NCBI RefSeq assembly: GCF_006345805.1 | Contig: NW_021832869.1 | Coordinates: 59,111-123,110, forward strand | DNA length: 64,000 nucleotides | Source: Octopus sinensis | Lineage: Eukaryota | Reading direction: 5' to 3' | In this document: in pieces, positions 3,307-56,075 of the stretch | How positions within the stretch are numbered: position 1 is the first letter of the stretch | Layout of the letters: each line of letters starts with the position of its first letter | The notes under the pieces: generated by a model | What the model was told of the DNA's origin: nothing | What the model saw: only the letters and a program-made list of their open reading frames with translations | Database searches by the model: none | Made by a program: the position numbers and the translations under genes

Positions 3307-6300
3307 ATAATCCATTGTTGCTTCCCTTTCTCTTTTTTGTTTTTCTTTTCCTCTTTCTCTTTCTTTCTATCTCACCAATAATCCATTTATTGCTAATTCT
3401 AATTTTCCATATCTATGTCTGTCTGTTCTGTTTGCAATATCCGTAATAATCGGAAAAAGACCATCCGTTGTGACCGTTGTTATGCCTTTTTCCATTTATC
3501 CTGCATCAAGCTTTCTAAGAAATCTGCCTCTTCCCTTTCCCGATGGGTTTGCTCTGCTTGCTCTTCTTTCCCCCCGTCATATTTCGCTCCTGCCATCTGT
3601 ACCGGGTCCTCTGATTTTACTAATCCTATCCCTTCGCCGGACCCCTTCCTGCTTAATCCAGAGTCTGTCTTAAGACTCGCTCGTGATTACCGGGCGTCCT
3701 ATCGTATTCTATAAGAATTCCTCGTTCTGCCCGTTTTTCCGCGGCGAAGGCTCTGTCTGCTTTGATCGAGTCAGTCATTTGTGTTCAGTCCATTCCGAAT
3801 TGGAACCGTTTGTTTTGCTTTGCCATATTTGCCCTGGGCTCCCCAGTTCAAGGCTTGGGCTCGGTAAAATCCCTTTCCTCTTCCATCAAGGAAAATATTA
3901 ATAAGTTCATGGAGGATTCCTTCATTCTGCCTCCTCTTCTGGGCAAGTCCCATGAACCAACTACTCTTAAAGATAATCGTATTCGTTTACGCAAACGTGT
4001 CAATTCCTGCCTTATGGCGCATGATGTCGGCTCTGCGGTCCGTATTCTTTCGTCTTCCGATTCCGTCCGTTCGATAACCCCGGATGTCCTCAAAATTCTC
4101 AGCGCCAAGCACCCGGCTGGCGATGTCCCTGCCTTTTGTGCCCGGACCCCTGAGGAGGTCTCGATCGCCTCTTCATCTGTCCAACAACTTTTGTTTGCTT
4201 TGAAATCTTTCAGGGGGAACAGTAGTGGTGGTGTTGACGGTCTCCGTCCCATTCACTTAATGGACCTCATCTCCAATACTGCTGAGGCTGGAAACCGTCT
4301 TTCTCAATCCATTGCCAAGCTTTGTAACCTATTTCTCCGTGGGGACATATCCGAGCATGCCAGACTGCTCTTCTTCTCTGCGAACCTGTCTGCTTTGGGG
4401 AAGAAAGACGGCGGCATCAGACCTATTGCCGTCGGGAACGTTTTTCGTCGCTTGTTTGCAAAGGTCGGATGCAAGCTTGTAATTCCTTCTATTAGCGACG
4501 AACTCCAGCCCATTCAGTTGGGTGTGGGGGTACCTGGTGGGTGCGAGGCCTCGGTCCACGCTGCCCGGTGTTTCATTGAATCGGCTCGTCTCTCAGAGCG
4601 GCCCCAGTTATTATTAAAATTGGATGTGAAGAACGCTTTCAATTCGCTCAATAGAAAGCATCTTCTTGAGGTTTGCAAGGCCAGAATTCCTTCTCTGCTG
4701 CCCTTCATTTTTCTTTCTTATGGTAACCCGACCCTCTTGGTTGCTGGCGATTCTTTCATTTCGTCTTCCTGTGGCGTACAGCAAGGCGATCCTTTGGGTC
4801 CTTTATTATTTGCCCTCTCGGTGGACTTTGTCGCCCGCAGGATTGCGTCCCCTCTTAATATTTGGTATTTGGACGACTGTACTATTGGTGGTCCGCCCGA
4901 CATTTTGCTAAACGACTTGCAATCTCTACTCCCGGCGTTGTCATCTATTGGTCTTGAAATCAATTCTCTAAAATCTGAAATCGTTAATCTTAACGTCGAA
5001 GACCTCACCTTCGAAGTCCTTTTTGCCCAGTTTCGTGGCCTCTTGCCCGATCTGAGGCAGACCTCTTATTCTGAACTTGAAATCCTGGGTGCCCCGATCC
5101 ACCACCAATCGGTCTCTCGTATTCTCGATTCCAAGAGAAATGCTCTTGCTTCTCTTTGTGATAAACTTGTGGACATCGATCCCCATCCCGCTTTTTTTAT
5201 CCTCAAAAACTTTCTTTTGATTCCGAGGATCAATTATGTCCTAAGGAGTTCCTGTTGCTTTTCTGTTCCCTCTGCTTTGGAGTCTTTTGACGCTCTGGTG
5301 CGTTCTTCAGCCGAGATTATTTTTAACGTCAAGTTCGATGATGTCGGTTGGCGTCAGGCCAAACTTCCTGTTCCTTTTGGTGGGCTTGGGCTCCGCTCGG
5401 CTCTCGACATTTCTCTTCCCGCTTTCCTTTCATCGTCTTCAGGATTGTATCTTCTTGTCCATAAGATTCTTGAAAAATCGCCCGGATCTCGTTTGGACTC
5501 TGATATTAATTCTGCACTTTTGCTTTGGAAGGAAAAAGGGCTTGAGTTCCCTTCTGATAGGGCCCTCCAACGTGAATGGGATAAAATTCTTAGTAAGCAT
5601 CATGCGGACTCGTGGAGGCTCTCCTGAACCAGCACAGACTGGCTTGTTACCGTGCCAGCCGCCAACCGCATTCTGGCTCTTGGCTTAACTGCCTTCCTTC
5701 GACCCATTTGGACACCTGTCTTGACTCCGACGCCCTCCGTTTTGGCATTTGCCTCCGCCTCGGACTTCCGATCTGTAGTCCCCACCCCTGCCGGTGCGGA
5801 TCTACTATGGACGTATACGGGCTCCATGCCCTCTCCTGCAAGAAAAGCGCGGGTCGTATTCCACGCCATTCGGCGATTAACAGAATCATTCTCGACTCAC
5901 TCGAAAAGGCCGGCTACCCTTCTGTCCTTGAGCCTAAGGGTCTCGACCGTGGTGACGGGGAAAGGCCGGACGGCTCTACGTTGTTCTCGTTTTATTCTGG
6001 GAGACCTTTGGTCTGGGATTCCACTTGTGTGGATACCTTCTCAAAGTCTTTCATCAACGAATCGGCCTCTCTTGCTGGGTCTCGTGCTAATAAGGCTGAG
6101 CTTTCGAAGTGCCGGAAATATCAGTCTTTGATGGATGACTTTTGGTTTTGGCCAATCGTTGTCGAGACTTCCGGCGTCTTTGGCTCCGGGACCCTCACTT
6201 CCCTAAAGAAACTGGGACATCTTTGTTCTTCGCGGTCCAAGGACCCTTGGGAATTTACTTTCCTCATTCAGAGGATCCTGCTGGCTGTCATGCGTGGCAA

Positions 6301-6686
6301 CAGCTGTTCCCTCCGTCTCGCTGGGAGAATTTATTAGTTTGTTGACTTTACTTAGTAGTTTGACCCTAACATGCTTATCAATTAAACTGTTCAAAATACA
6401 AGACCACATTGTCAATACGAACAGGTTCTGTTTTGGCTACTTCGAGTATAAGTCTCAAAACATCTACCTTATCTGACCAATATACTTGGAAATGTCAGAA
6501 TCAAAACTGTTCGCGGTCCAAGGACCCTAGGGAATTTACTTTCCTCATTCAGAGGATCCTGCTGGCTGTCATGCGTGGCAACAGCTGTTCCCTCCGTCTC
6601 GCTGGGAGAATTTATTAGTTTGTTGACTTTACTTAGTAGTTTGACCCTATTAACATAATTGTGCTGTCAAAAAAAAAAAAAAAAAA
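3307..6686 (+). mobile_element. Near full-length CRE-clade non-LTR retrotransposon (family 1): PHD finger + RT + CCHC knuckle + restriction-like endonuclease, poly(A)18
   Basis: ORF pieces 3415-3714 (C4HC3 PHD), 3762-5627 (GVQQGDPLGPLLF, YLDD), 5612-6337 (CRCG..HALSC, RH, RPDG..WD, QRILLAVMRGN); two 1-nt frameshifts near 3712 and 5612; poly(A) 6669-6686. Confidence 0.9.
6373..6507 (+). mobile_element. Merlin/IS1595-like transposase fragment between duplicated CRE 3' ends
   Basis: Translates CSKYKTTLSIRTGSVLATSSISLKTSTLSDQYTW, resembling the C..C..SIR.GS.F..S.L.L....Y.W N-terminal motif; 6508-6668 repeats the CRE 3' end. Confidence 0.55.
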
Positions 6687-7138
6687 CTTTGATAGTTGAA
6701 ACCACATTAGCACAAGCATTAACACAATTTACCACCAATTGACAGCGCAATCAGAAGAATTTGCGTAAAAATATTAACTATTTACTTGAGTTTTTCGTAA
6801 AGATAGAATTTATTTTCGGTATGCCTCTTTTCCTAAACTTTTTTATTATTCAAAAATAATTTTTTAAATAGATAACCGAAGGAGGAAAAACGAAGCTGAA
6901 GAAAAAACGGTCAGCTTAATAAGGTAATTAATTAAATCTTTTTTGTGTGTCGCTTTTTTGTGTGTCGCTTTCTTGCCTGCCGCATCTCTGCCTGCCGCAT
7001 TTCCGCCTGCCGCATCTCCCCCTGCCCCATTTCCGCCAGTAAAAAACAAAAAAATAAAAAAAGAAAAAAAAGGAAATTACAAAGGAAAAATGAAAAAATT
7101 AAATATAAAAAAAAATAAACCACAAAAAATGAAAAAAA

Positions 7139-27483: not shown

Positions 27484-28945
27484 GGGTTTTCCACACTTTT
27501 TCGCCACTTTTGCAAGCAAATTCTGCCACTTTTTCAAGCAATTTCGTGCATAAGAAGATTATCGGTTTATTGTTTCAAGCAAATTCGCTACTTTTCCAAG
27601 CAATTCCGTCACTTTTTCAAGCAATTTCGCAATTTTTTCAAGCAATTTCGCCAAATTTTTTAAAAATAAATTTACCTTTTTTATGTCAATTAAATACATT
27701 TATAAACCTATTAAACGCTACATTTTTTGTCATGAGTAGAAACAAAATTAACAATGATACTAGAAGATTGACAATAACTCACTCAAATTCAGGACTAAGC
27801 AATACGGAAATCTCAAAAATACTTAAACTTCCAAGGAGTACAATAGTTTCAATAGTTAACACATTTCATAATGAGGGAAGAATATTTATAAAACCAACAG
27901 GTGGAAATAGATCATCAAAGCTGAATGAAAATCAAAAAAATCAAATTAGAGAATGGGTTGATTGTCACCCTACGATAACATTACGTGATTTACAAAATAA
28001 ATTTTTTTCAGAACAAAATTTAGCCATCAGCAAAAGCACTGTTCATCGATGTTTAAAACAGTTTCACTACACTCTTAAAATGATAACTACTGCACCAGAA
28101 GCAAGAAATACTCTTAGGACGTTGGAATTAAGATTCGAATATGCTACGCAGTTCGATAAAAAATTACTTGAAATCGATGACAAAAAATTATTTTCATTGA
28201 TGAAGTTGGATTTAATACATCATCAAGAACTAAAAAAGGGAGAGCAAAAATGGGTTTAATTCCATATTTAGTCATCGCCTCTGTAAGAAGCAGAAATTTT
28301 TCCGTTATTGCTTCCATGAATAAATATGGAATGATCATGAAGAAATTACACAATGGACCAATAAATGGAGAATTTTTTGTGAATTACATTGTTAACTTAA
28401 AATCTACGTGTATTGACAATGGAATTGAATCCCCAGTTTTTATTATGGACAACGCTAAAATACACCATTACAAACTGTTAAAATCAAAAATGAGTGAAAT
28501 AAATTTTAGATCTACCACCATATTCACCATTTTTAAATCCAATTGAAAATGTTTTTTCGAAATGGAAGAATCATGTAATTAGCGGAAATGCAAAAAAATA
28601 AAATGAATTGTTTATTTTAATTAATGAGGGCTTTGAATCAATTACAGAAAATGAGTGTAATGGATTCTTTCGAAATATGTTACATTATGTAGCAAAATCA
28701 TTCATTCAAAGAACTGATCCATTAGAAATTGATTAAACTTAATGATTCTTTTGTCTCATTAATTTTGCTCTCTTTTTCGGCTTTCCTTTTTGAATAAATA
28801 ATAATTCATTCATAGAGCTATAAACAAAAATCTATATTAGTAAGACGAGTATATTTCTAAAAAATAAATTTTTAAAAATTTGGTGCAATTGCTTGAAAAA
28901 ATGGCGAAATTGCTTGCAAAAGTGGCGAAAAAGTGTGGAAAACCC
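27484..28945 (+). mobile_element. IS630/Tc1-mariner transposon with 36-bp TIRs, TA duplication and internal ~23-bp direct repeats; transposase (about 27732-28725) frameshifted
   Basis: TA|GGGTTTTCCACACTTTTTCGCCACTTTTGCAAGCAA ... reverse complement|TA; HTH, DNAKIHH, PPYSPFLNPIE-like motif. Confidence 0.92.
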
Positions 28946-30449: not shown

Positions 30450-32355
30450 CTAAAAATGAGTCTTTATTTCCCGACAAAACACCCCGAGATCCCCACGTGT
30501 GTACATCCAATCGACCTGATTTTTTCAGACATAAGTTTAAATATGATAGTAAATTGTATTAAAAAAGAACAAGGTGATTTGTTGCTCAACATGTTGATCT
30601 TCTCGCACGTCCTACAAATTCTCGTGACAAAACAAACTTGGACCTTCTTCCAATCAGAATACACATCAATCATTACATCCTCCCAACGACAGTTCTCGCA
30701 ACCTAGAGTCCCCAATCTACAATCAACACGCATTACTGACCTCTTTCGATATAGGATAATCCTCATTGGGCAGTAAAATCAGTTTTTGAGACCTTTGCCT
30801 CAACTACCAATAAACAAACACACACAACCTGCTCAACATAGGACCAATGTCGAGACAAGCCCTGTTGAGACGACTTTCATCATTTAGCAGTTCTCGGAAT
30901 TTGTCGAGACTCTCCTTCATATATTCAATCTCCTCGGTCTTGAATGGTTTCCTGTAAATAAACCATTCAACATGACCAAAATCTCCTTCAAACGGGAATT
31001 GAACTTTTCAACCAATCTAATTAACATTAAACAAAAAAGCACTTTGATTTAGAAAAGTCTTGTTCGTATTTTAAAAGCACATCACACTTTGTTTCAAGGC
31101 GGTCTCGGATTATAGTGACCTTGCTCACAATAATGTGGAAAATTTGTCTCCTCTCACTCAAGAGTGTCTCGGCCTGTCCAGAAGGTATGTGGACTATAGA
31201 ATGGAGACTCAAACTCGTCGAAGGACCCACCAAACCCAACAACTCCTCGACAAAATTTAAAATCTCAAATAATCCCACACCAAAGACTCAGAATGCTCAA
31301 ATCTGTCGTTTATTGTAGCATCATCTTTTGGATGAGACGTCTCAATGGGAATAAATTTCTCCTTCTTAACAGAAATAGCATTCCTTATCATCTCATTGCT
31401 AGTCAGTGCCTCCCGCGTTTCAAGTTCTGCCACTTTTCTCTTGAGAAAAACATTTTCCTGTCTAAAACCCGAATCGGGCGAGGCTACGTCGTTTGGCTCG
31501 TTTAAAAGTACGGAGCATCCGAAGAGTCTCAAACTCCCTCAGTCGGTTCCTTAACTCCGCCAAAGCCTCCCCTTGTCGCTCGATTGTAGCTAAATGTCGT
31601 TCTCCCTTGCAGAGCGACCCCATGGCCATTAAATCATTTGCCTTTGGATATCGCTCTAACTGGGCTACGGTTCTTCTCATCTCGGGAATCCGCCAGTTCT
31701 TGCCCAAGTTGGACAAGTCTGTCCTTCGCTTCCTTGTGGGATTCATTCAACTTGGAATATGTCTGCACTCTAACACATGAGAATAAGGGTCACTCGAGTT
31801 GTGCCATTTTTTGATTTCTTGCTTGTATTTGGCTACTTCATCGGCACATGAATTACGTTGCAAGATAACTATTTCCTCGTCTTTCTTTCCGAGTAGATTC
31901 CGAGAGTCTGTCAACTCCTGACTCACTCCGTTGTTCGAGTCTGACACTCTCGCCCTCAAAACATGCATTTCCTGCTCCAACGAAGAGATTAGAGATTCCC
32001 TCTCTTCACATTTTGACTCCAATCTGCCAATTTCCATTCTAAAATAACAAAATATATTTCCATACTTTAATCGATTAACTGTCGTTTTGAACTCGGTAGA
32101 ATTGACTTGGTCACCCGACTGAGACTTGCGGTTTTCCATTTCTGTGTTGATGACAGACAAACCAGAGTTTGAGTCGGATTGACTCGATTTTTGCTGCTTT
32201 TTTTGGGTAAGTTTTAAAAGCCGCTCTTCCTGTTTGCAAATTGTCAACGAATGCTGCTTGATCTGCTCACGGAAATTTTGTGACTCGGTCTCATAGTACT
32301 CTCGCTGGTCCGATATCGCCCTCAACCTCAACTTATTCTCATTTTCCAAGGCGAC
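30450..32355 (-). CDS. FHAD1: FHAD1-like coiled-coil protein, C-terminal half
   Basis: GSLCKGERHLATIERQGEALAELRNRLREFE matches recalled FHAD1 motif; tiny introns; 3' end approximate. Confidence 0.7.
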
Positions 32356-32659
32356 CTTACGATTCGATTTCTCCCAGCAATGTCACCGGTTTTATAGCCC
32401 ACCGGGTTGGATATCGAAAAAACTAACAAAAAAATATAAATATAATCTAAAAATCATCTGAAAATATAATTAACTTGATTTTCTTCTTTTTTTTATTAGT
32501 TTTTATATTTCTGCGTGCTACATAAATCACACATAATTCATTTGAAGCTTTACATTTTTTAAATAAATAAAATTTGATTTATTTAATAGGAGTCAACAAA
32601 AAATAAGAATTAGTTTATTTAAAAAAAATTAAAAAAAAAATTCTAATGATTTTTGGTGG

Positions 32660-33345
32660 CAGTCTTTCATCTTCTCTTTATATTGCTCTGCTTTTCCATT
32701 TCGTATTTTGTGCATTCTAATTTTATTAATAAAAAGAAACTAATTAAATTTATAAGCCCAGAGCCTTCGAAGTGAGCAGAGGGTGGCAATCCACACACCT
32801 CCTCCCCTTCTTCCTCCTCTTCTCTGGCACTGTAGACCTTCGAGAAGGTGCAGTCCAGCGCCTCTCGCTGACTAAATGTCAGGAAAGGGCTTGATTGGCG
32901 AGTATCAAACGAGACACTCTCCAGAGTCCTCTTAAGAACAGTTGACTGTATATAAGCCTGTAGAGACTGATCTACACCCAACTGTCTTAAATACCGCTTG
33001 TGGTAGTGACCAGTCCATCCCATCACACACGGGATGACATCAGTCCTAGCTCGTTTGCAAGGAGGTCATACTTCCTCCTTTTCTCCACTATCTGCAAACG
33101 GTCTAGGCATGCCCGCCTCCACGATAACAATCTCCCCTTATCGTGGACCACAATGTCGGGTCTGTTGTGTTGGACAACAATCGAGGTGCGTATCCACCTT
33201 AATGCACACCCGCGAGTTCTCACACCGATTGAACTCGATGGGTTCGCAACACCGCCTCAAGCCATACTTATTGCAAAGCAAAAGATGGAGGGACCTCACT
33301 ACCTCGTTATGCCTCCATGTGTAATCATGGTAAAGCATACTGCAC
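32660..33345 (-). mobile_element. R4/NeSL-like REL-type retrotransposon 3' fragment
   Basis: RHNEVVRSLHLLLCNKYG, NRPDIVVHDK, KYDLLANELG, YHKRYLRQL..AYIQSTVLKRTLESVSFD; same type as 55439-56075. Confidence 0.75.
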
Positions 33346-33597
33346 TAAGTTTTTCACATCATAGATCATTAAAAAAATTCGAAATTAGTTTAATTTATAG
33401 AAAAATTTTCCATTTATATCCAAGAGCTGGAATATCAAGTGCAAATTAGTCTTGGGACGGTGAGGTATTTATTCACTTTTTGGTAAAATATTTGGATTTA
33501 TCTTCATATCGATCAAAGAATTTATACTAATCTCGAATTCATTCGTATATTCACACAATTATTAACATCGAAATGTGGGAAATTGAATATTTCAACA

Positions 33598-33680
33598 TTG
33601 CTGTGATCCGAGGGAACAGCTTCGCCATTCGCGAGGCTGGCAGGGTGTCTCGTGAGGCCATTAATTAGCTTAGCTATCTA
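33598..33680 (+). mobile_element. CRE family 3, short 3' remnant
   Basis: AVIRGNSFAIREAGRVSRGH*; last 31 nt identical to 60432-60462. Confidence 0.6.
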
Positions 33681-33738
33681 TTTACTTTAATAACAGTTAT
33701 GCAATCGGGATTATTGCGCAACTTACTTGCACAAGAGA

Positions 33739-34246
33739 ATTACGAAATAAAAAATAATTATTGAGATTTATTGAACTGAAAAAACACCATTGAAAATAAG
33801 AAATGTATAAACAGGTAAATTAACTTTACTTTCGAGCAAATCTCGGTGTTTGAGGATAAGTTAGACTAGGAACCCGCACACTCGGAAGTTATCGAAAATA
33901 CAAATAACCCAAACCTTATCCTTGTAATACAAGGATTTGGGCACAGGTCTGGCCTTGTAGACTGTGCTGGCACGGTCGACACCGTGAAGAGTACAATATT
34001 GTCGACAGTCCTGAGTTTGATACAGGCCTTCTGGGGAGAATGTCAAAGGGCGGCAAAAAAGCAGCCCTCCAGTAGTGAGGAGGAGTACTCGTCGTGGTCG
34101 AGAATATTGTGGGCCATTAAATATTCTCGACAGTCCTGAGTTTGGTCGATAAAGTCTTGTAATTTGACAGGACACGGATCAAACATTCTGCCCAATGGTG
34201 TTTTTTCAGTTGAATAAATCTCAATAATTATTTTTTATTTCGTAAT
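33739..34246. mobile_element. 508-bp non-autonomous TIR element with 54-bp TIRs and GC-richer interior
   Basis: 33739-33792 is the reverse complement of 34193-34246 with 1 mismatch; no clear TSD. Confidence 0.8.
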
Positions 34247-34787
34247 GAAATTTTGAAAGTGTCCATTTATCCGACTGTGGCATAAAAAACAAAAAAACAG
34301 CGTTGATTTGCTTTCATGTTGAGCGGGAGTTCATTTCAAAGTGATAAATGCAACGAAATTTCGAAAAGCAAAGAATCTCAACGCGACCAGGAATTTGTCC
34401 AATCGCTAAGAAAATGCAATAACTAAGAGCAAAGAATCTCAAGAACAAAATTTTATATCCGATGCACAGCTTGAAATTCTTGTTTCAATAGAATCAAACA
34501 GTCGTTCTTGTTTCAATAGAAAATATCATAAAAAATATCATAAATAGCTTTATCGACTCAAAATATAAAGAATAAAAACGAATAAACCAACTTTGGGCAA
34601 ACCAACCACTACTTTAAAATCAACCAGTTAATTAAGACATTAAGTAAAACTCAGAGCCTGAACCCCTAGTGGTTTCTGACCCCCTCGTTGTGCTTTATCG
34701 ACTCAAAATATAAAGAATAAAAAATAAAAAATTTTCATTAAAAATAGGATGAAATACAATTTTCAAAATTTCAAAATAAGTAGAATA

Positions 34788-35211
34788 TTGTTCTCGTTTT
34801 ATTCTGGGAGACCTTTGGTCTGGGATTCCACTTGTGTGGATACCTTCTCAAAGTCTTTCATCAACGAATCGGCCTCTCTTGCTGGGTCTCGTGCTAATAA
34901 GGCTGAGCTTTCGAAGTGCCGGAAATATCAGTCTTTGATGGATGACTTTTGGTTTTGGCCAATCGTTGTCGAGACTTCCGGCGTCTTTGGCTCCGGGACC
35001 CTCACTTCCCTAAGAAATGGGACATCTTTGTTCTTCGCGGTCCAAGGACCCTAGGGAATTTACTTTCCTCATTCAGAGGATCCTGCTGGCTGTCATGCGT
35101 GGCAACAGCTGTTCCCTCCGTCTCGCTGGGAGAATTTATTAGTTTGTTGACTTTACTTAATTAAAATTAACATTTAGTAGAATATAAGTTCAAAAAAAAA
35201 AAAAAAAAAAA
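34788..35211 (+). mobile_element. 5'-truncated CRE family 1 copy with poly(A) and ~10-bp TSD
   Basis: Near-identical to 5981-6352; TSD AAGTAGAATA at 34778-34787 and 35212-35221. Confidence 0.92.
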
Positions 35212-35689
35212 AAGTAGAATATACAGATTGAAGGAATAAACTTACAAATATTACAAAATGATGAAATTTCAGATAACCATTAAAAGAAACTACATCTCAG
35301 AATATCCCTTCTGAATCCAATTAAATAAAAAAATAAAGATCGACCAAATAATGTAATACAACAACAAGGTATGTCAACCGCGTGTTTACACGTGCATAAT
35401 TTATTAGGTTTTCTATTAATAATTGGGTGACCAAAAATTAAAATAATTTATTAATGACAACAAACATTATTTTAATTAGAACATAATTCTACCTAGTAGC
35501 TTATAAACAGTGTAAATATTAGATCGCATATCTCATAGTGTTTTTAAGTGATCAGTCGTTCTCATCAGTGGAAAGCTTCAACAAAAACTATCATAGATGC
35601 AAGAAAAATTGATTATCAGAAGAGCATGTATAAGAAGTGGGAGCTCAAAATTATGACTCAAGAACGAAAAAATTAATCAGAGAAAGAAC

Positions 35690-37446
35690 CAGCCTCAGAA
35701 AAGAAAAGTATCGACCAAAGTAATCATCGATCGAATCAGGCTCTAAACATGCTTATTACGAATAATACCAACCAAGTCCAAAGGAAGAAGCTAAGCCGAA
35801 TCTCTAGAGCCATGAATAAACAAGCCTCTATTTCGGCCATGTGGACGATGTTGAGACGCTTAAAGAATCCTGACGAGCGTAAAACAGAAACATATCAGCT
35901 CAATCTAAACAATTTTATGAAACACTGTGTCAAGATTAGTCATATTCCTTATAAAAAAATGAACTCACAGTCAAGATTAAAATCAAAGCCATCCAAAAGG
36001 CCCCCGACGACTTATTTTCTTCCTGAAGAGGTGTCTGAAACAATCTCGAATCAGAAGAAAACAAACTCATGTGGACCGGATGGAATTCCGCTTATTCTAC
36101 TAAAACACTTGGGCCCAGTTTCAATAAATGCTTTAACCACGATCTATAACACATCATATTCACGAACTCTATACCGAACTTATGGAAACTATCAAAAATC
36201 CGGCCAATATTAAAACCTGGAGACCGAAAAACGACCCCGGCTCCTATAGACCAATATCCCTTATATGTGTGCTGTCAAGAATCTTGAAAAACTGGTTCTA
36301 AAACATATTCGCCCTTTACTCCCACAATCCACATTTCAACATGGATTCAAGGAGGATTGTCAACGACCTCCTTCCTCACCACACTAACAGATTCATAAAT
36401 GAAGGACACAAAAGAAGAAATGGCAGGAGAAATCAATTGTATGCACTATCGACATTCAAAAAGGGTTTGACTCCGTCCCAAGGAAGATCCTAATTCAAAA
36501 GATATTTGGTACAAATATTTCTACACCTATGAAGCTATGGATAGCGAATTTTTTGAGCGGACGTCGTGGGAAAGTGTGCGTCGGGAACGAGAGTTCAAGA
36601 TCACGCTTATTGCCCAATGGTGTACCCCAGGGTTCTCCTTTATCCCCGACCCTCTTCAACTTATTTCTGAATGATCTCCCGGTTCCTATGGATAATAATG
36701 AATACTACTCTCCTATGCCGATGACATAGTTGTCGCATCTAGGGATGTAAATGTCGAATACGCGAAGGAAAGACTACAAAGAATACTGGACGAATTATAT
36801 GGATGGCTATATGAAAACAGACTACATGCATGTTCCGAAAAGTCAGCAGTCACCCTATTCACGAAAAACAGGAAGATGGGGACGAAAATTATTGAAGTCA
36901 CGCTGAATGGGTCCCAATACCACAAAAGAAAAACAGAAGATATGGGTGTAACGTTTGACACTTTCCTCTGTTTCTCACCTCATGTTGAATCAATCGTGTC
37001 AACTTGTATAAAGAAAATCAATTTTGTGGAAAGCCTTTCTTTCGAACTGTGGGAGAACTTGTCCGCCAGGGGTAGAGACCCTTTACAAGCAGTATATCGA
37101 GCCAACAATAGGCTATGCATGTGCTGCTTGGGGCTGTAACCTGGCGGCAACGAACCAACTAAAAATCGAGAAAATCCAAGAAAAATCCATAAACATACTG
37201 AAGGACCATACCGACATGAAAATTGTCCATCGAACACTGGAGTCTCTTGTAGAGGCAAGGGGAGGGATCGGGAGATGGACCACAAGCATTTCACCGTACA
37301 TACAGAAAGTGTGTGGGGTCACGGTCTGAACATCGTGAAAAGATGGCTAGACTGTTGAGAAGTGTCGGAATCACCTGAACACGTTAGTTAATGGTTAAGA
37401 CGGTGATTCTGTTTTTGGCTTAAATAATAATAATAATAATAATAAT
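35690..37446 (+). mobile_element. LINE family A (RT domain, 5'-truncated, frameshifted), (TAA)n tail
   Basis: SCGPDGIP, YRPISL, NGVPQGSPLSPTLFN, YADD; ORF ends GIT*; tail 37421-37446. Confidence 0.9.
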
Positions 37447-37565
37447 CACCCCTACACTATGACATACGACAATAAATAAGGTGTATAATAAATATACTTT
37501 TATTTTTTTTTATTTTTTTTGAACATAATTTATAGTAACTTTTATTTTAAATACAATATTTGGTC

Positions 37566-39598
37566 TTTCCAAGGCGACTTGCATTAACTCTGCTATTCGG
37601 TCTCCTCCTTTGAAAGAAGACTCATCCTCTCCTCCGCCAATTCTCGGATCTTGGCCATTTCCCGACACGATTCTTTATTTTCTGAAATATAATTTTTAGT
37701 TGGAACCTTTGGCAACAGTTCTCTCCACTGCAAGTTCAATCTGCCTCCTCAATCTGCATTCTGATTGGCCTCTTTAATGTCCTGAGCGTATTTTTTCCAT
37801 TTCTTGTACAGACTCGTCGTGGAGTGCTTAATGCAAGTCGCCAACACGGCGATATTCTCAGTAATAGCTGTGATATACTTCATGGAAATACTCAGACGGC
37901 TTATAGACCATCCTCCAAGTAATCTTTGTGCAGTTTTTTGCTTTGAAAAGACAAGTGTTTCACGGATCCAAACCAAAGAGTCCCTCCTCAATCTGCTCAC
38001 CAGACAGTCCAAATGTGAAGACATAGCACTCCCACCCTCCAAATACTCTCCCTGCACTCCCAAAATAGAATAACCAATTCCCTGTCGATTGAAACACGCA
38101 TATCTCTCATTTTCGACTGAAAGTCCGCCTCCCTGTTGTTAAGGACGCCAATTTCAGTGGTCAAAGCTCCCCCCTTGCCTTCGTAAACCTCCCGGACAAT
38201 CTGGCGACCTCTCGTGCAATGACCTCATCGCTGATCTCCTCGCAGTCCGTGAGCAAGTCTCTGACGGAAGTGAGGATCTTTTCTTTAAATTGTTCATACT
38301 AAACCGTTTTTACATTTTGGTAACCTTATTGACTGTTTTTTGGAGTTCAAGACGGTTGGCGTTTCCCGCCTCTTCTAACTGGTGGTTTTCGGTTTTTTAT
38401 TTGTCAATTTGAGTTTCCAGTAGATTGCATTGCTTGGCAGTAAATTGACGGCAAAACCTCCGCGTATTTGTCTATCCTTTTCTTTTGTCTTAACATTTCC
38501 TGTCTCATAATCTGCTGTAAGTCGACGTCCTTCACTTTCTTGGATTTTTAGACTCTACAAATCAAATCGAGACAAAACATTTTGCAGACTCTCGAGCTCA
38601 GGGTTGTCCAATGTCATATTAATAAAAATAACATCTTTTTTCAAGAATTCTCAATCTCGACTGACTGCCGGAATATCAATTCGTCCTAAAAGTCTAACTT
38701 CACCTTAGAAACTGAATCTCTTTGTAGTTGAGTAACTAATTCCTCCAATATCTTCTTGTCACGGTGAACACATTTAAATTCCGCGGAGGATGGCGACTTT
38801 GGTTCTTCCACGTTTTGGACTGATCTTGTTTCACTCAATTTAACCTGAAAATATAAAATCACAAAACCTTGTCTGAAAGTGAGTCAATAAGAGAGTCTTT
38901 GTATGTCACCTGTTCCTTAAGTCTCTGCCGTAACTCGAGACTGTTCGCCAGCTCTTGGGCGGTGAGATCCTTTCCTGAGGTGGTCTACTTTGCGTTCCAA
39001 TTCGTGAATAATCTCTCTCTGCAGTCTCAACTCTTTGTCCCTCCTTCCACTTTCCGAGACCACATTTTTGCTCTTCTTAACTCTTCTCGGAGTTTTGTGA
39101 CCTCGTCTTCTTGATGAGTCCTACTGGATGGGGACATTGGCTCACTAAAAGTTATTTCCCGGTCTCACAATCGGTTGCCGGAGTGTAGAGAGACTCCCCT
39201 TGGCTCTGAAAAAATTATTCCTGGCGGAAAATTTTCAACCAATTGGGAATGACGGGTGATGGTGGGACAGTTATTTTGTACAGGTGGTATTTCTCCAAGA
39301 CAGAACTCGAAAGCTGATGGTTCGAGACCGAAATTGATTATATCTCCCGGGGATAGTCTGACTGTCGTTATTCTGTAGCCGTTCACGTGAGTGCCTGTGC
39401 GGGTGTTCAGATCTTGAAGGATAAATGAATTATTGTGTTTTGAATAATGAATTGTGGCGTGTCTATCGTCCACAGAACTCGACTGGATAATATATTATGT
39501 GATACATCGATTATTAGTCCACATTGGCGGCGTCCTACAGTGGTACATTCCCCGAGTTCGTATAATATGCCATTGCTTCTCAGATATGCACAATTCAT
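37566..39598 (-). CDS. FHAD1: FHAD1-like protein, N-terminal half with FHA domain, frameshifted
   Basis: AYLRSNG..TTVGR, IDDRHATI, FILQDLNTRTGTHVNG, LSPGDIINFG. Confidence 0.8.
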
Positions 39599-46920: not shown

Positions 46921-48563
46921 ATGAAGGCAAGCAGTTCGGAAATATTGAGCAGAGTGACCTGCAAGTATTTCTATACGCTGACCGTCGCCGTCATGGGGAC
47001 TTCTTTCGCCTATGGACACGGAAATGGAGTTCTCGACGGAATGGAAAAAGTATTAGGTGAATAAAATGAGCCGTTAGTTTGCAAAAGAATTCACGAGGCT
47101 GATTTTATATTCTAGATATCAAAAAGAATACTCAGATACCGAATAATATGAAAAGCGTGGGGATTGATTTGGTCAGGGATATCGAGCATTTACTTGGTCG
47201 GGGCCATTGCGGGGGCATTCATAGCCCCGACCTTCGCAGATAAATTCGGGAGAAAGAAGGGTCTTCTCTACAACTCTGCAGTTGTTATACTCGGAGCAGT
47301 ATTGGGTGCAATAAGCAAGCCTGCCAACTCGTTCGAACTACTTTTTGTGTCCCGACTCTTCAGCGGTCTCAGCGTCGGTCTGTCGTTTATAAATAAGTTA
47401 GGAATATTGGTTCCCTGTGTGAGTATGTACGTCAGTGAAATATCGCCCAAAGAAATCCGAGGAGCAGCAATTGCTTTCCACCAGTTTGGCGTCACTTTCG
47501 GGATATTGTTCGCACAGATATTAAACATTCCGGCGATATTTCGTACTCTCACAGTTCTAGCCCATAGGTAATCAAAATTATTGGAATTGGTCATTTTTAA
47601 TTCCAGGGATTACATCTACACTGTTCGTTATTCTATTTTCTTTCCTGCCCGAGAGTCCACGATACATCTACTTAACAAAAAATGACAAAAATAGATCCTT
47701 CAAAGGTTTTTTGGCAGAATCTATTTTGTAGCATTGAACCAGTTCAGGAAAAAACAAGAATATTCTTATGAGGAGATTAACGAAATGGACCTGGAAATAA
47801 AAAATATATCCAAGAAAAACATATCATGGAGAGAACTATTTTCCACAAAGGACCTTAGCAAGCCACTCACAATAGTCTTTGTGACTCTCATCACCGTCCA
47901 ACTGACAGGAATTAACGCGGTTTGTACTCAAACTATCCTCAAATTTAGATATTTACGTTTGCCTCTAACATTTACATGACTGCTGGCTTTTCCGAAGATA
48001 AAATCCCTTACGCAGTTATTGGAACTGGTCTTGTCAACTGTATAACTACTATAGCTGCTGTAGCAGTCTTAGTTTGTACTTGATTAGGTGCCCTTCATTG
48101 AGATCTTTGGGAGAAGACCACTGCTACTGTGGCCACTCACTTCGATTATACTTGTTTAATTCTGATGGTCATATCCTTTGTCCAACAAGTGGGGATTCTC
48201 GCCATTTTATCCACCTACTTATTTGTTGTTTCTTTTGCAGTTTCGTTTGGTGTTGTCCCGCAGGCAATTATGGTTGAATACTTTCGCCAAAATGTCAGAG
48301 GAAAGCAGTTTCGGGGGCAGTTTTTTGCTGGAAACTTGACCAACTTTTTAGTTTTTTGGATTTTCAGGCCTGCACTTAGCCATGTTGTATTTATATTTCT
48401 ATTCGCCTAGGATACTGTTAAGCAGTACATTCTACTTTTTTTTACGGGAACTTGCTTTTGTTCGCTCGTGTTCCTATATTTGTACATGCCAGAGACTAAA
48501 GATAAAACGTTCGACGAGAACTCAACTGCCTTAAGCAACTGGGACACAGTTTTTAAAAAATAA
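46921..48563 (+). CDS. GLUT/SLC2A-family MFS sugar transporter; a few indels
   Basis: DKFGRK, EISPKEIRG, PESPRY, QLTGINA, GRRPLLL, PETKDKTFDE; introns 47378-47401 (24 nt), 47706-47731 (26 nt), 47920-47948 (29 nt). Confidence 0.92.
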
Positions 48564-49071: not shown

Positions 49072-51285
49072 TCTTAATAATAAAATGGTATGGTGTCTGT
49101 CTGTCTGTGTGTGCACACCAACTTCAAATTGGCAAAGTACAGATAAATTGTCAAAATCTTTCCCCCTTAGCCAATAATGGGGAACAAGCTTAAAATCATG
49201 AACTCCTCCAAGAATCTTCCATCCTACGATGTCCTCGACTTACATGATGAGGTCCTTAAAACCTTCCCCCCAAAAAAATTAAAAAAAAAATTCTGCATTT
49301 GGTTAAAATGAACAACTACGATGTCCTCGACTTACATGATGAGGTCCTTAAAACCTTCCCCCCAAAAAAAATTAAAAAAAAATTTTCTGCATTTTGGTTA
49401 AAATGAACAACTACGATGTCCTCGACTTACATGATGAGGTCCTTAAAACCTTCCCCCCAAAAAAATTAAAAAAAAATTTTCTGCATTTTGGTTAAAATGA
49501 ACAACTACAATGTCCTCGACTTACATGATGAGGTCCTTAAAACCTTCCCCCCCAAAAAAATTAAAAAAAAATTTTCTGCATTTTGGTTAAAATGAACAAC
49601 GTTAATGTCCTCGACATTCATGATGAGGTCCATTAAAACCTTCGAGGCAAAATCTCACGTATTAAGAATATCCTTGATGAAAACGACAACGAGAATATTA
49701 ACAATGATGAACTCCCAATTATTCTCGATAAAGAAATTCAATTCATCCTATGATTTTCTCTTTAAAATTAAATGCATATATCATTATCGACCATGAATCA
49801 AAATTAAAGCTATTATCATATTTGACTTTGACAGAATGTGCAATTACAGATTGCACGACCTTGAATAGAGTGTGCAATAACAGATTTTGAAAAACACTTT
49901 GATAGTTTTTTTTTTTTTTTTTTTTTTTTTATTAAGGAAGTTAATTTATTAAGACCGAAAATAGTTAAGTTCCAGCGGCGAGGACGCAGTGTGCGTTGCC
50001 CCGAACAATGGCCAGGCGATGCGCTGGCGGAACCAGAGGCTCTCTCTCGAGTCCTTGAGCCTTAGCAAAATCATTAACACAATTTACCACCAATTGACAG
50101 CGCAATCAGAAGAATTTGCGTAAAAATATTAACTATTTAGTTAAGTTTTTCGTAAAGATAGAATTTATTTTTGGTATGCCTCTTTCCTAAACTTTTTTAT
50201 TATTCAAAAATAATTTTTTCAATAGATAACCGAAGGAGGGAAGACGATTTTAAGAAATAAGTTTTTCGTAAAGATAGAATTTATTTTCTGTATCCTCTTT
50301 TTTCCTAATATTTTTTATTATTCAAAATAATTTTTTTAAATAGATAACCGAAGGAGGAAAAACGAAGCTGAAGAAAAAACGGTCAGCTTAAGGTAATTAA
50401 TTAAATCTTTTTTGTGTGTCGCTTTTTTGGCTGCTGCTACTCTGCTTGCCGCATCTGCGCCTGCCCCATTTCCGCCAGTGGTTTGTCTAATCAAGGTCAC
50501 TAAGCTAAATCTCCGGACTATAAAGGCTCTTAAGCATTATCTTAATTGGCTGTTAAAAAATTAGACAGGTTGTTGCCGTGGCGGCAGAGATTTTTTTTGT
50601 TTATACTATTTTACAAATTTTTAAAGTTTTTTTTTTTATTTTTTGTTTTTAATTATTTATTTTTATTTGTTTTTTTTATTTTTTTTTGTTATTTTCTAAA
50701 AATTCAACCGGATTGAATTTTTAAACTCCTTAGATCCCTCTGGAATGCCGAATCATCTTTTAAAGTTAAAGATAGGCGTTCCAGTGGTTTTATTACAAAA
50801 TCTTGCGACACCTTAATTATGCAACGGAACGAGGTTAGTTATCAAAATTTGATGGCTAACGTAATAGAGGCGACGATATTAACAGGTAAGTATAGAGGTG
50901 AGGATGTTTATATTCCACGAATTCCGATAATTTCTGTTGAATTACCATTTAGATTTAAAAGGCTGCAATTTCCTTTGAGGATGAGTTTTGCAATGACAAT
51001 AAACAAGGCCCAGTGACAGTCATTAAAGGTAGTTGGGTTATTTTAGAGAGTGAGTGCTTTTCACATGGACAGCTGTATGTGGGATGCTCGAGGGTAGGCA
51101 GAAGAGAAAATTTATTCATATATGCCAAGAAGGACGGACGACAAACATCGTTTTATCAACAGGCGATAGAATAGGGCTACATTAACCAGGTAGTTTTATA
51201 CATCTACATAAACTTATAGTTGTTTGATGAAACAGGCCCTCCGCAGGAGCTAGGTCGCGGTGAGCGAAGCGAGCTGCCGAGCTAG
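49072..51285 (+). mobile_element. Non-autonomous Helitron 2 with ~94-bp tandem array (49225-49645) and PIF1 C-terminal remnant (about 50715-51173)
   Basis: TCTTAATAATAAAATGG start, hairpin + CTAG|T end; [22 protein letters not shown]. Confidence 0.92.
49906..50061 (-). mobile_element. CRE family 2 3' fragment with poly(A)25, nested in Helitron 2
   Basis: Minus strand encodes ...QRIALAIVRGNAHCVLAAGT* (with frameshift) followed by 3' UTR and A25. Confidence 0.8.
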
Positions 51286-55438: not shown

Positions 55439-56075
55439 ATGGCCACTATCGTAGAATTCATATCCCGAAAGTACAATATTGAAAATATAAATGAACTGAC
55501 AATAACGAAATTGGTGGAAATTCAACATGAATATCTAATGAGGCAGATTGAAACTAAGCCACTGCATTCTATTCTTCTCCAGTGTTTGAAGGACACTGAA
55601 GTTAATGAATCTGCAGGGTGGCTAGTTCATGGAAACAACTCTGCAAGAACTGAAGAATGTGTTGTCTACTACAGGATTGAAATTTTTTTGGATAACGGAG
55701 AAAATAATGGAATCACTGCAACTCTTGCTACCAAATGTGGACGAATGCTTAACAGCTCTTATCTAAGACGGCATAATGAAGTTGTCAAATGTCTACATTT
55801 GCATTTATGCCGCCAATACGGGATAAGAAAAACGAAGAAATTAAACTCACTCAGTTCAATCTGTTGTCGCCAAAGAAGCTGTGGAAATTCGAGTGGACAC
55901 AACTATTTCTACGGATACGCTGTTTCAAACAATAAACCAGATATTTTTGTCCATGACAAGATGAGGATACAATTACACTCATTGAAGTTGCGATTACCTC
56001 ACAAAATTGCCTAAAGCAAGTTGAAGTGGAAAAGTTCCACAAATATGACCTTTTGGCAAATGAATTAGGACCTCT
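55439..56075 (+). mobile_element. R4/NeSL-like REL-type retrotransposon fragment
   Basis: RRHNEVVKCLHLHLCRQYG, NNKPDIFVHDK, KFHKYDLLANELG. Confidence 0.8.

Follow-up and report, generated by a model that had tools for sequence, protein, structure and literature searches.

We analyse a window of 64 kb (the whole stretch of DNA under study) that holds three host genes: DRC7, an MFS transporter and, on the minus strand, a gene with an FHA domain whose coding sequence stops and resumes on either side of a 5.2-kb insert. DRC7 and the MFS transporter are compact and transposon-free. The DNA is of dicyemid type, with tiny introns. LINEs are dense in the window; repeats make up 49% of the published dicyemid genome, in which copies of LINE ORF2 are abundant (PMC6736024). 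The features of the split gene and of the insert are outlined in Table 1.

Table 1. Split gene, direct repeat, insert and transposon fragments, in window positions.
Feature	Position	Strand	Description
Host gene, upstream half	37579..39598	-	FHA domain, then coiled-coil exons with 23-27-nt introns
Frame problem beside the junction	37593..37621	-	TAG at 37596-37594 in the exon frame
Direct-repeat copy 1	37566..37578	-	Upstream exon part ends here; first two bases are the GT of the putative donor
Insert	32356..37565	.	5,210 bp, GC 37%; mosaic of TE fragments with AT-rich segments between them
LINE-A	35560..37447	+	5'-truncated, degraded non-LTR retrotransposon; RVT_1 domain; antisense to the host gene
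LINE-B	34789..35212	+	3' fragment of a second LINE; A22 tail; 99% identical to 5981-6354
Inverted-repeat element	33725..34260	.	68-nt arms, 90% complementary; RT-like scrap (..ILPNGV..)
Retroelement C-terminal remnant	32860..33344	-	WRHNEVV...HNRPDIVVHDKG; host-gene orientation; protein-level relative at 55745-55831
Direct-repeat copy 2	32343..32355	-	Encodes V-A-L-E; downstream exon part begins here
Host gene, downstream half	30830..32355	-	Motif FREQIKQHSLTICKQEERL (~32270); segment GERHLATIERQGEALAELRNRLREFE (~31560)

The split gene and its reading frame

The FHA domain of the host gene spans its first two exons (39598-39506 and 39482-39169; Pfam, E=5.7e-16) and is followed by E/K/L/Q-rich, heptad-like sequence. 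On the far side of the insert, the downstream half fits a permissive gene model with five mini-introns and no frameshifts, equal to the MFS control. An HMM made from 48 orthologous exon ORFs alone finds the downstream ORF with E=1e-12, in an alignment that begins four residues from the repeat, and all 48 of these exons run uninterrupted across the equivalent position and for at least 45 codons further upstream. Two motifs of the downstream half, REQIKQHS.TIC..EER and C.GERH...AL.ELR.R.RE.E, are common to ~97 exon ORFs, and two foreign contigs carry both with their order preserved. Judged by this homology, the two halves are one formerly continuous exon that is interrupted exactly at the repeat, and the claim of the first-pass annotation that both belong to one gene is supported in the form of a single interrupted exon of an FHA/coiled-coil gene. 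Because the orthologous exons continue past the site in 48 of 48 cases, we take the insert to be derived rather than an ancestral intron. We also considered an old intron that had expanded, and rejected it: the orthologous exons are continuous and homology restarts at the repeat.

The name FHAD1, which the annotation had given to the gene, is a different matter. The FHA domain and the conserved motif family agree with it, but the name itself comes from no tool output, and among the matches to the downstream half, cluster members included, none is called FHAD1. A human segment that we take to be from FHAD1 shares 78% identity with P0090, a bat hit; the name is a putative one. We refer to the host as an FHA/coiled-coil, FHAD1-like cilia gene, after the FHA domain and the conserved motif.

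Next to the insert, the upstream exon frame (...IRELAEERMSLLSKEETE) runs into the TAG listed in Table 1, which can be escaped either by one additional base (AA to AAA, at ~37597) or by a 29-nt GT..AG mini-intron at 37621-37593 (AT 52%). At least two frame breaks in the upstream half are beyond rescue by any GT-AG mini-intron. The two flanks had been said to join in frame after one homopolymer correction; the join itself is indeed open, but the gene requires several corrections. The nearby DRC7 has homopolymer frame breaks of the same kind and at the same density and, since a conserved gene carries breaks of this type, those of the host gene are probably homopolymer assembly errors too. No verified nonsense codon is seen in the host gene. 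Homopolymer deletion errors in conserved genes make pseudogene calls based on frameshifts unsafe in this assembly.

The direct repeat and the ends of the insert

Coding sequence stops and resumes at two exact copies of GTCGCCTTGGAAA (as read on the minus strand; 13/13 identity), and no third site is found in the 64 kb even when one mismatch is tolerated, so that the 13-bp repeat reported at both break points of the gene is exact at both and occurs nowhere else in the window. When the flanks are joined with a single copy of the repeat they give one open frame, ...RIAELMQVALENENKLRLRAISDQ.... The removable unit (the insert plus one repeat copy, 37578..32356) is 5,223 nt long; on the strand of the gene it starts with GTCGCC, and its last bases, which are those of the insert, are CGTAAG. 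There are 14 equivalent registers in which a unit of this kind can be removed, and GT-AG ends occur in one of them, register 0. In a simulation with sites derived from the window, any GT-AG register arises by chance in 4.0% of cases. The GT at 37578 and the AG at 32356 that had been proposed as the ends are thus both present, in the sole GT-AG register of the 14.

The outer ends of the insert are AT-rich and unique within the window. Neither terminal inverted repeats nor a terminal poly(A) were found at either end, as the annotation had said, and the same search turned up no microsatellite tail there. Neither outer terminus has a second copy in the 64-kb window at three or fewer mismatches, and the AT-rich segments between the elements of the insert match nothing elsewhere in the window.

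Could the insert have been mis-joined during assembly, in the Platanus/Falcon merge of a repeat-rich region? The published dicyemid assembly combines short-read and PacBio RS II assemblies (PMC6736024), and the homopolymer consensus errors in the window lend this idea some colour. A mis-join, however, would not yield an exact 13-bp duplicate of unique exon sequence at the two ends, with the exon resuming in register, and we consider an artefact very unlikely.

Transposon content and the origin of the repeat

Now we consider what the insert is made of. The first-pass annotation counted five nested elements; we find four clear ones, along with other repeat scraps. In LINE-A, one or more in-frame nonsense codons are present and the terminal tail is (AAT)8, at 37423-37446; its 3' end has a 91%-identical copy at 2370-2153, and the element is collinear with a LINE at 44424-41551 that has both APE and RT. 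LINE-B is flanked by a target-site duplication (TSD) of its own, 9-10 bp long, (A)GTAGAATAT at 34779-34788 and 35213-35222, and is the one inner element on which such a duplication is seen. The four later TE insertions all lie inside the insert and none lies in the ~3.5 kb of exons (p ~0.035 under uniform insertion). Because these later elements spared the exons and landed solely in the insert, their distribution is a hint of continued selection on the exons once the first insertion had taken place.

TSDs of LINEs and Penelope-like elements are variable in length, typically 7-20 bp, and 13 bp fits this range; neither cut-and-paste DNA transposons nor LTR elements make duplications of this length. 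The best reading of the repeat is that it is a TSD, left by a retroelement-type insertion that turned into a nest of transposons. The mechanism that we infer for the outermost insertion, whose termini match no identified family, would begin with a staggered cut with a 13-nt offset, as when a LINE or Penelope-like element inserts by target-primed reverse transcription; the element would have entered the middle of a coding exon of the FHAD1-like gene, and the inserted DNA would later have become, or would already have been, a nest of other transposons. The likeness to known TSDs of these elements lies in an exact short repeat of host sequence that adjoins the insert, in a LINE-rich setting where TE-into-TE nesting is typical and where a nested LINE, with its 9-10-bp TSD, stands 2.4 kb away. 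On the other side, no recognisable 3' tail abuts either copy of the repeat, the (AAT)n tail of LINE-A stops 118 bp before the boundary, and nothing else in the window shares the outer ends.

These same features suit a different origin, in which the 13-nt overhangs of a staggered double-strand break were filled in and a pre-existing piece of TE-rich DNA, genomic or extrachromosomal, was taken up whole. In that case the nested elements would predate the insertion and give no age for it. Intron gains with flanking short repeats are reportedly attributed to staggered-break repair. The outer termini of the insert have no TE hallmark and are unique in the window, its AT-rich segments resemble intergenic DNA, and a single inner TSD is what one would expect if the other junctions had formed elsewhere or had eroded. 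Against capture, a 13-nt stagger is typical of the endonucleases of retroelements, which are abundant here and recently active (the 99%-identical LINE copy), and we rate this origin as improbable. The first-pass annotation had treated the outer unit as something other than a transposon, favouring break repair or excision. We do not adopt a non-TE origin, because a 13-bp TSD is normal for target-primed reverse transcription, a nested LINE in the same DNA carries a TSD of about 10 bp from this process, and the window is packed with LINEs.

Fate of the interrupted gene

If the repeat is a TSD, the simplest reading of what the insertion has done to the gene, and narrowly the most likely one, is that of a gene-killing insertion, that is, a disrupting or polymorphic insertion that is not cleanly removed; we put its probability at a little short of even. 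A transcript would read 21 codons into the insert before reaching a stop, or would be polyadenylated at an AATAAA 19-61 nt in; this hexamer occurs 14 times on the sense strand of the insert, three of them no more than 61 nt from the exon end. The outcome would be a truncated or null allele, and with it either a polymorphic insertion or a gene heading to loss in a gene-poor lineage. With TE insertions that disrupt exons, and with the nested TE clusters of repeat-rich genomes, the locus shares the flanking TSD, the broken frame, the stop at 21 codons and the pile-up of TEs. It differs from them in that the host gene is not decayed beyond assembly error and that a GT-AG escape route exists.

Several observations tell against disruption. 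The host gene has no visible decay other than frame breaks of the assembly type, and the gene model of its downstream half is as clean as that of an intact gene. The exon-restoring GT-AG register, expected by chance at only ~4%, would on this reading be a 1-in-25 coincidence. The outer termini lack a poly(A), a microsatellite tail, terminal inverted repeats and a second copy in the window, and the nested TEs lie inside the insert and nowhere in the exons. If the insertion is disruptive nonetheless, it would be an ordinary TE insertion in the repeat-rich genome of a gene-losing parasite, with a cilia gene lost or present as a polymorphic null.

The same TE origin allows for another fate, which we regard as somewhat less probable: a putative transposon-derived giant intron, spliced from the GT of the TSD to the AG of the element. 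Here the reading frame would be restored, with a predicted junction of ...GAGTTAATGCAA to GTCGCCTTGGAAAATGAG..., and a retroelement insertion would have turned into a functional 5.2-kb intron in a place where introns are ~26 nt. The gene would be functional and the intron a neutral landing pad, a safe harbour for the TEs that came later. In favour of splicing, GT-AG ends occur solely in the register that restores the exon, the frameshifts of the host look like the assembly errors of DRC7 and come with no verified nonsense codon, the downstream half is intact in its five-intron model, and the nested TEs are confined to the insert. Both LINE fragments run antisense to the gene, the usual orientation of LINEs in introns. 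The splice motifs of D. japonicum are reportedly reduced (PMC13644364), so that the GTC/AAG sites may be usable; there are documented cases of a TSD that came to serve as a splice site (PMC11282704).

The sites themselves are less informative. Their PWM scores, 0.5 and 2.0 bits, are within the range of 16 true introns and also within that of decoys: 74% of the 292 GTs and 32% of the 288 AGs in the insert score at least as high as the proposed donor and acceptor. The proposed donor has C at +3, as does none of the true introns (n=16), and the proposed acceptor is AAG, as it is in one of them. The confident introns in the window (n=16) measure 20-99 nt and the removable unit 5,223 nt, which bears out the earlier estimate of about 200 times the length of the other introns. 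Among dicyemid introns two-thirds are shorter than 30 bp, with a median length of 27 bp (PMC6543705), and the mean is 38 bp in the genome with 49% repeats (PMC6736024), from which TE-bearing introns are evidently very rare. A giant intron would thus exceed the modal intron ~200-fold in length and the longest in the window 50-fold, would contain hundreds of decoy sites equal to or better than its own and many AATAAA, and would still require a frame fix 16 nt upstream of its donor. Because introns of this lineage are tiny, the splice sites non-discriminating and AATAAA close to the exon end, we disfavour splicing. That DRC7 and the MFS transporter hold no transposons also speaks against a rescue at the RNA level.

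It is useful to compare the insert with introners, which are known from Micromonas, dinoflagellates, fungi and tunicates (PMC11282704). There too a TE enters an exon, the GT comes from the TSD and the AG from the element, and exact removal leaves one TSD copy and a restored ORF. Introners, however, are tens to hundreds of bp long and multi-copy, are mostly DNA transposons with 3-5-bp TSDs and terminal inverted repeats, and have documented splicing, whereas the insert is one composite of 5.2 kb, has a TSD of 13 bp and no terminal inverted repeats, and shows no second copy of its outer element in another gene within the 64-kb window. Splicing, if it occurs, would make the insert an uncommon and datable case of a retroelement giving rise to an intron through a TSD-derived splice site, introner-like and in a metazoan, and the dicyemid spliceosome, adapted to introns of ~26 nt, would still handle introns of kilobases.

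A last fate is removal from the DNA rather than from the transcript. The 13-bp repeats could act as pointers for IES-like programmed elimination, with the segment cut out of the DNA of some cells, possibly in circular form, and the gene thereby restored. Direct repeats at both ends, of which one copy is expected to remain, are the geometry of ciliate IESs and their pointers, and for dicyemids there are reports of chromatin elimination and of circular DNAs (Noto et al., 2003, cited in PMC6543705). The first-pass annotation had likewise offered an IES-like segment. Yet size and content put the insert outside the known class of dicyemid circles: these are 0.3-1.6 kb (with a median of 702 bp in the long pool), have mtDNA genes as their only conserved domains and share motifs with mitochondrial minicircles (PMC6543705), and they carry no TE or RT domains, unlike the 5.2-kb, RVT_1-bearing insert. 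Moreover, a TSD accounts for the repeats without new machinery, and the insert appears in an assembly for which whole animals, mostly somatic, were used (PMC6736024). We consider such elimination highly improbable.

A 13-bp repeat at the coding break

On the minus strand, the 13-mer GTCGCCTTGGAAA occurs at 37578-37566 and again at 32355-32343, which are the very points at which the coding sequence of the FHA/coiled-coil host gene stops and resumes, as the first-pass annotation had claimed; at one mismatch or fewer it has no other match in the 64-kb window. Read along that strand, GAGTTAATGCAA directly precedes the upstream copy and ATGAGAATAAG directly follows the downstream copy. One copy of the repeat together with the 5,210-bp insert forms a removable unit of 5,223 nt that can be taken out in 14 equivalent registers, and only register 0 gives the GT start and AG end that had been described for the insert. 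The chance of a GT-AG pair in any register, with sites and ends sampled from the window, is 4.0%. When the flanks are joined with one copy of the 13-mer, the frame is open and reads ...RIAELMQVALENENKLRLRAISDQREYYETESQNFREQIKQHSLTICKQEERL..., which bears out the expected in-frame exon; a spliced transcript would read ...GAGTTAATGCAA followed by GTCGCCTTGGAAAATGAGAATAAG... across the junction. An insert that stays in place would end translation at a stop 21 codons in. A pair of 13-mers is by chance not rare in 64 kb; the improbable part is its position exactly where coding stops and resumes.

We are confident that transposon-rich DNA has really been inserted into a coding exon here and that a target-site duplication (TSD) flanks it. 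Filled-in staggered cuts in the target produce just this: 13 bp of unique exon sequence, exactly duplicated, on both sides of the inserted DNA. Non-LTR and Penelope-like retroelements have TSDs of variable length, for which 13 bp is typical; cut-and-paste DNA transposons and LTR elements have fixed TSD lengths, and 13 bp is not among them. Because retroelements are, in addition, abundant and recently active in the DNA of the window, where one has left a 9-10-bp TSD within the insert, the repeat is probably the TSD of a retroelement-type insertion. Since a mis-assembly would hardly produce a second, in-register copy of 13 bp of exon, we give little credence to an assembly artefact.

A host gene with an interrupted exon

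In the upstream half of the host gene, two exons encoding an FHA domain are followed by coiled-coil exons whose GT-AG introns measure 23-27 nt. For the downstream half, an exhaustive HMMER search with the ORF at 32355-31750 recovered three short proteins with REQ[IV]KQHS[LV]TIC.ME[ED]R in common, and a profile search then widened this REQ..KQHS motif family to 97 unnamed exon-like ORFs on eukaryotic contigs. Word-index protein searches were blind to this fast-evolving protein. Against an ortholog HMM built from 48 of the 97 ORFs, with the window sequence excluded, the downstream ORF scores E=1e-12; HMM positions 49-99 correspond to ORF residues 14-65, and the V encoded by the repeat is ORF residue 10. 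The exon runs at least 45-75 codons farther upstream in 48/48 orthologs, whereas in the window the DNA upstream of the downstream repeat copy belongs to the insert, is rich in AT and contains a stop codon. The exon, unbroken in other organisms, is thus cut here, at a position without an ancestral intron.

The family shows a pair of motifs, REQ[IV]KQHS[LV]TIC.MEER and then C[KR]GERH..I.RQ..AL.ELR.R.RE.E, in about 97 exon-like ORFs on contigs from diverse eukaryotes (see the table). On two foreign contigs, L001 and L002, the GERHLATIERQGEALAELRNRLREFE segment is matched 1.7 kb and ~8 kb downstream of the REQ..KQHS motif on the same strand, just as the two follow one another in the window. The joined window peptide aligns across the junction without a gap, and homology across the junction would be compatible with the data. 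The upstream exon added no score over shuffles (45.8 bits vs a mean of 45.9), and the profile there is generic coiled coil; 126 of 300 shuffled upstream sequences scored at least as high as the real one, and shifting the junction register made no difference. No FHA exon was found within 10 kb in the foreign contigs, and an apparent 972-aa gene in L001 was rejected as a tandem-repeat artefact. Neither the joined junction peptide nor the FHA N-terminus gave a match in protein searches, and exact look-ups of window ORFs gave no record, in collections that contain no dicyemid data. Residues 172-194 of the ORF at 31750-32355 (minus) show a sub-threshold match to a Pfam Ca-binding family (E=0.006, 17 bits vs a cut-off of 25) inside a coiled-coil stretch, which we treat as chance.

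The name FHAD1, given in the first-pass annotation, appears in no Pfam, PDB or cluster-member result: for the motif family Pfam returned coiled-coil noise without a model, PDB had no match, and the cluster members are nameless. The Pfam FHA domain agrees with it, and a segment that we take to be human FHAD1 aligns with the bat match P0090 at 78% identity and with no gap, so that this segment is a real orthologue of the motif family and FHAD1 a provisional label. FHAD1 has been described as cilia-associated.

Composition of the insert

Two AT-rich segments bound a series of retroelement pieces and an element with inverted arms (see the table). The 3' end of the RT-LINE (LINE-A) has a second copy at 2370-2153 that ends at the same tail. 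As had been stated earlier, the ends of the insert carry neither terminal inverted repeats (TIRs) nor terminal poly(A); likewise, no terminal tail, tRNA match or Rfam match was found. The window holds no second copy of either insert terminus, blastn and tblastx at several sensitivities found none of the outermost element, and no TSDs were found for LINE-A, the inverted-repeat element or element C (the retroelement C-terminal remnant). The RT-LINE was ruled out as the outer element, its tail falling 118 bp short of the boundary, and a TIR-like similarity of 35342-35371 to the right end was rejected because the flanks do not match. Such anonymous termini would also suit a capture that involved no transposition, in which a pre-formed TE-rich fragment was taken up at a staggered break; we consider this improbable.

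Elsewhere in the window, a near-full-length LINE at 3762-6703 (plus) has an RT domain and, C-terminally, a CCHC/nuclease-like region; the insert's 99%-identical fragment stems from its family. The 3' end of this LINE is duplicated, with a second poly(A) at 6510-6703. The LINE at 44424-41551 (minus), with Exo_endo_phos_2 and RT domains, is broken into several ORFs and is a distant relative of the RT-LINE. A hAT dimerisation domain in one ORF (32-1084, plus) and a Tc1/mariner-type HTH in another (27510-28259, plus) indicate that DNA transposons are present beside LINEs. Tandem repeats of ~95 bp at 49170-49600 (plus) have a translation that repeats ...NNYDVLDLHDEVLKTFPPKK.KKK....

Features of the host gene, its matches, the insert and the DRC7 gene
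Feature	Position	Strand	Remarks
FHA domain exons	39598-39506 + 39482-39169	minus	23-nt intron between; Pfam E=5.7e-16
Motif pair, window	about 32270 + about 31560	minus	
Motif pair, L001	10217-10312 + 11947-12060		
Motif pair, L002	858-953 + 8897-9010		
AT-rich segment	32356-~32660		no match elsewhere in window
Retroelement C-terminal remnants	~32860-33344	minus	WRHNEVV...HNRPDIVVHDKG; related to 55745-55831
Element with inverted 68-nt arms	33725-34260		
LINE 3' end, A22 tail	34789-35212		own TSD (A)GTAGAATAT; 99% identical to 5981-6354
Degraded RT-LINE, 5'-truncated, (AAT)8 end	~35560-37447		RVT_1 E=8.8e-19; collinear with APE+RT LINE 44424-41551
AT-rich segment	37448-37565		no match elsewhere in window
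DRC7 break sites	23210-23150, about 22800, about 22610	minus	

Frame breaks and the fate of the insert

The earlier claim that one homopolymer correction would be enough fails, because the coiled-coil segments change frame at several places without a plausible mini-intron. Most of these breaks call for one extra base in a homopolymer (A5 at ~39068, G6 at ~38170, AA at ~37597), and one, at ~38972, for the loss of a base. With confident introns only, the minimum number of ORF-breaking events per kb is 4.3 in the upstream half, 2.1 in the downstream half, 0 in the MFS transporter gene and 3.4 in the degraded LINE. A permissive model of introns and frameshifts, weakly discriminating in that one non-coding control was also rescued, assigns 5 introns and no frameshifts to the downstream half, equal to the MFS control, 12 introns and 2 frameshifts to the upstream half, and 4 of each to the degraded LINE. 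We dropped a pseudogene reading of the break counts, given this weak discrimination and the homopolymer breaks of like kind that DRC7 shows in its conserved core.

DRC7 (minus strand, about 24000-21400; Pfam MORN_DRC7, E=3e-24) should be indispensable to a ciliated animal, yet has ~4 single-base homopolymer frame breaks. Its conserved core reads GNCFEFTVLSSVPFLLGAGYDAYVVSGYA only if, within 60 nt, a T3 run gains one T and a G run one G, and two further A-run breaks follow, for a total of ~2.5 per kb. The motif GNCFEF...GAGYDAYVVSGYA, the most conserved of the gene, contains two of the breaks. In the published D. japonicum assembly, contigs from Illumina data were combined with others from PacBio RS II/Falcon (PMC6736024). 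Taken together with the DRC7 breaks, this means that the frame breaks of the host gene are best read as homopolymer consensus errors and not as evidence of decay, and that frameshift-based pseudogene calls in the assembly are unsafe. The nested LINE has at least one in-frame nonsense codon, whereas none could be verified for the host gene.

The insertion may well be disruptive or polymorphic, which is by a small margin the reading that we favour. That it is instead a TE-derived giant intron, spliced from the RNA, is somewhat less likely. The 16 confident introns of the window measure only 20-99 nt, and the insert is far from the dicyemid intron median of 27 bp (PMC6543705). Its GTC donor is atypical, with C at +3 in 0/16 true introns, as is its AAG acceptor (1/16); a splice-site PWM from the true introns is so low in information that 74% of the 292 GTs and 32% of the 288 AGs within the insert match or beat the proposed sites. 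It also carries 14 sense-strand AATAAA signals, three of them at +19 to +61 nt from the exon end. The D. japonicum genome, with 49% repeats and a mean intron of 38 bp, evidently keeps TEs out of introns (PMC6736024). Yet some facts do favour a giant intron or another form of removal: the GT-AG register would be a 4% coincidence, the host exons are without demonstrable decay, both LINE fragments are antisense, and 4/4 later TE insertions (p about 0.035) lie in the insert, the exons, ~3.5 kb in all, having received none. Removal by programmed DNA excision is very improbable, as the circles described in dicyemids measure 0.3-1.6 kb, carry no domains beyond those of mtDNA genes and may have nothing to do with diminution (PMC6543705).

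Two further observations concern introns in the window. In the host gene, an in-frame 81-nt GT..AG stretch at 39050-38970 (minus) would skip two stops and holds, in another frame, the very coiled-coil-like peptide ELRLQREIIHELERKVDHLRK; it is either an unusual intron or a pair of compensating homopolymer errors. The MFS sugar-transporter gene at 46921-48560 (plus) is intact, so the assembly is clean in that stretch, and its introns measure 25-29 nt except for one of 99 nt (47057-47155), which shows that an intron can reach several times the modal length.
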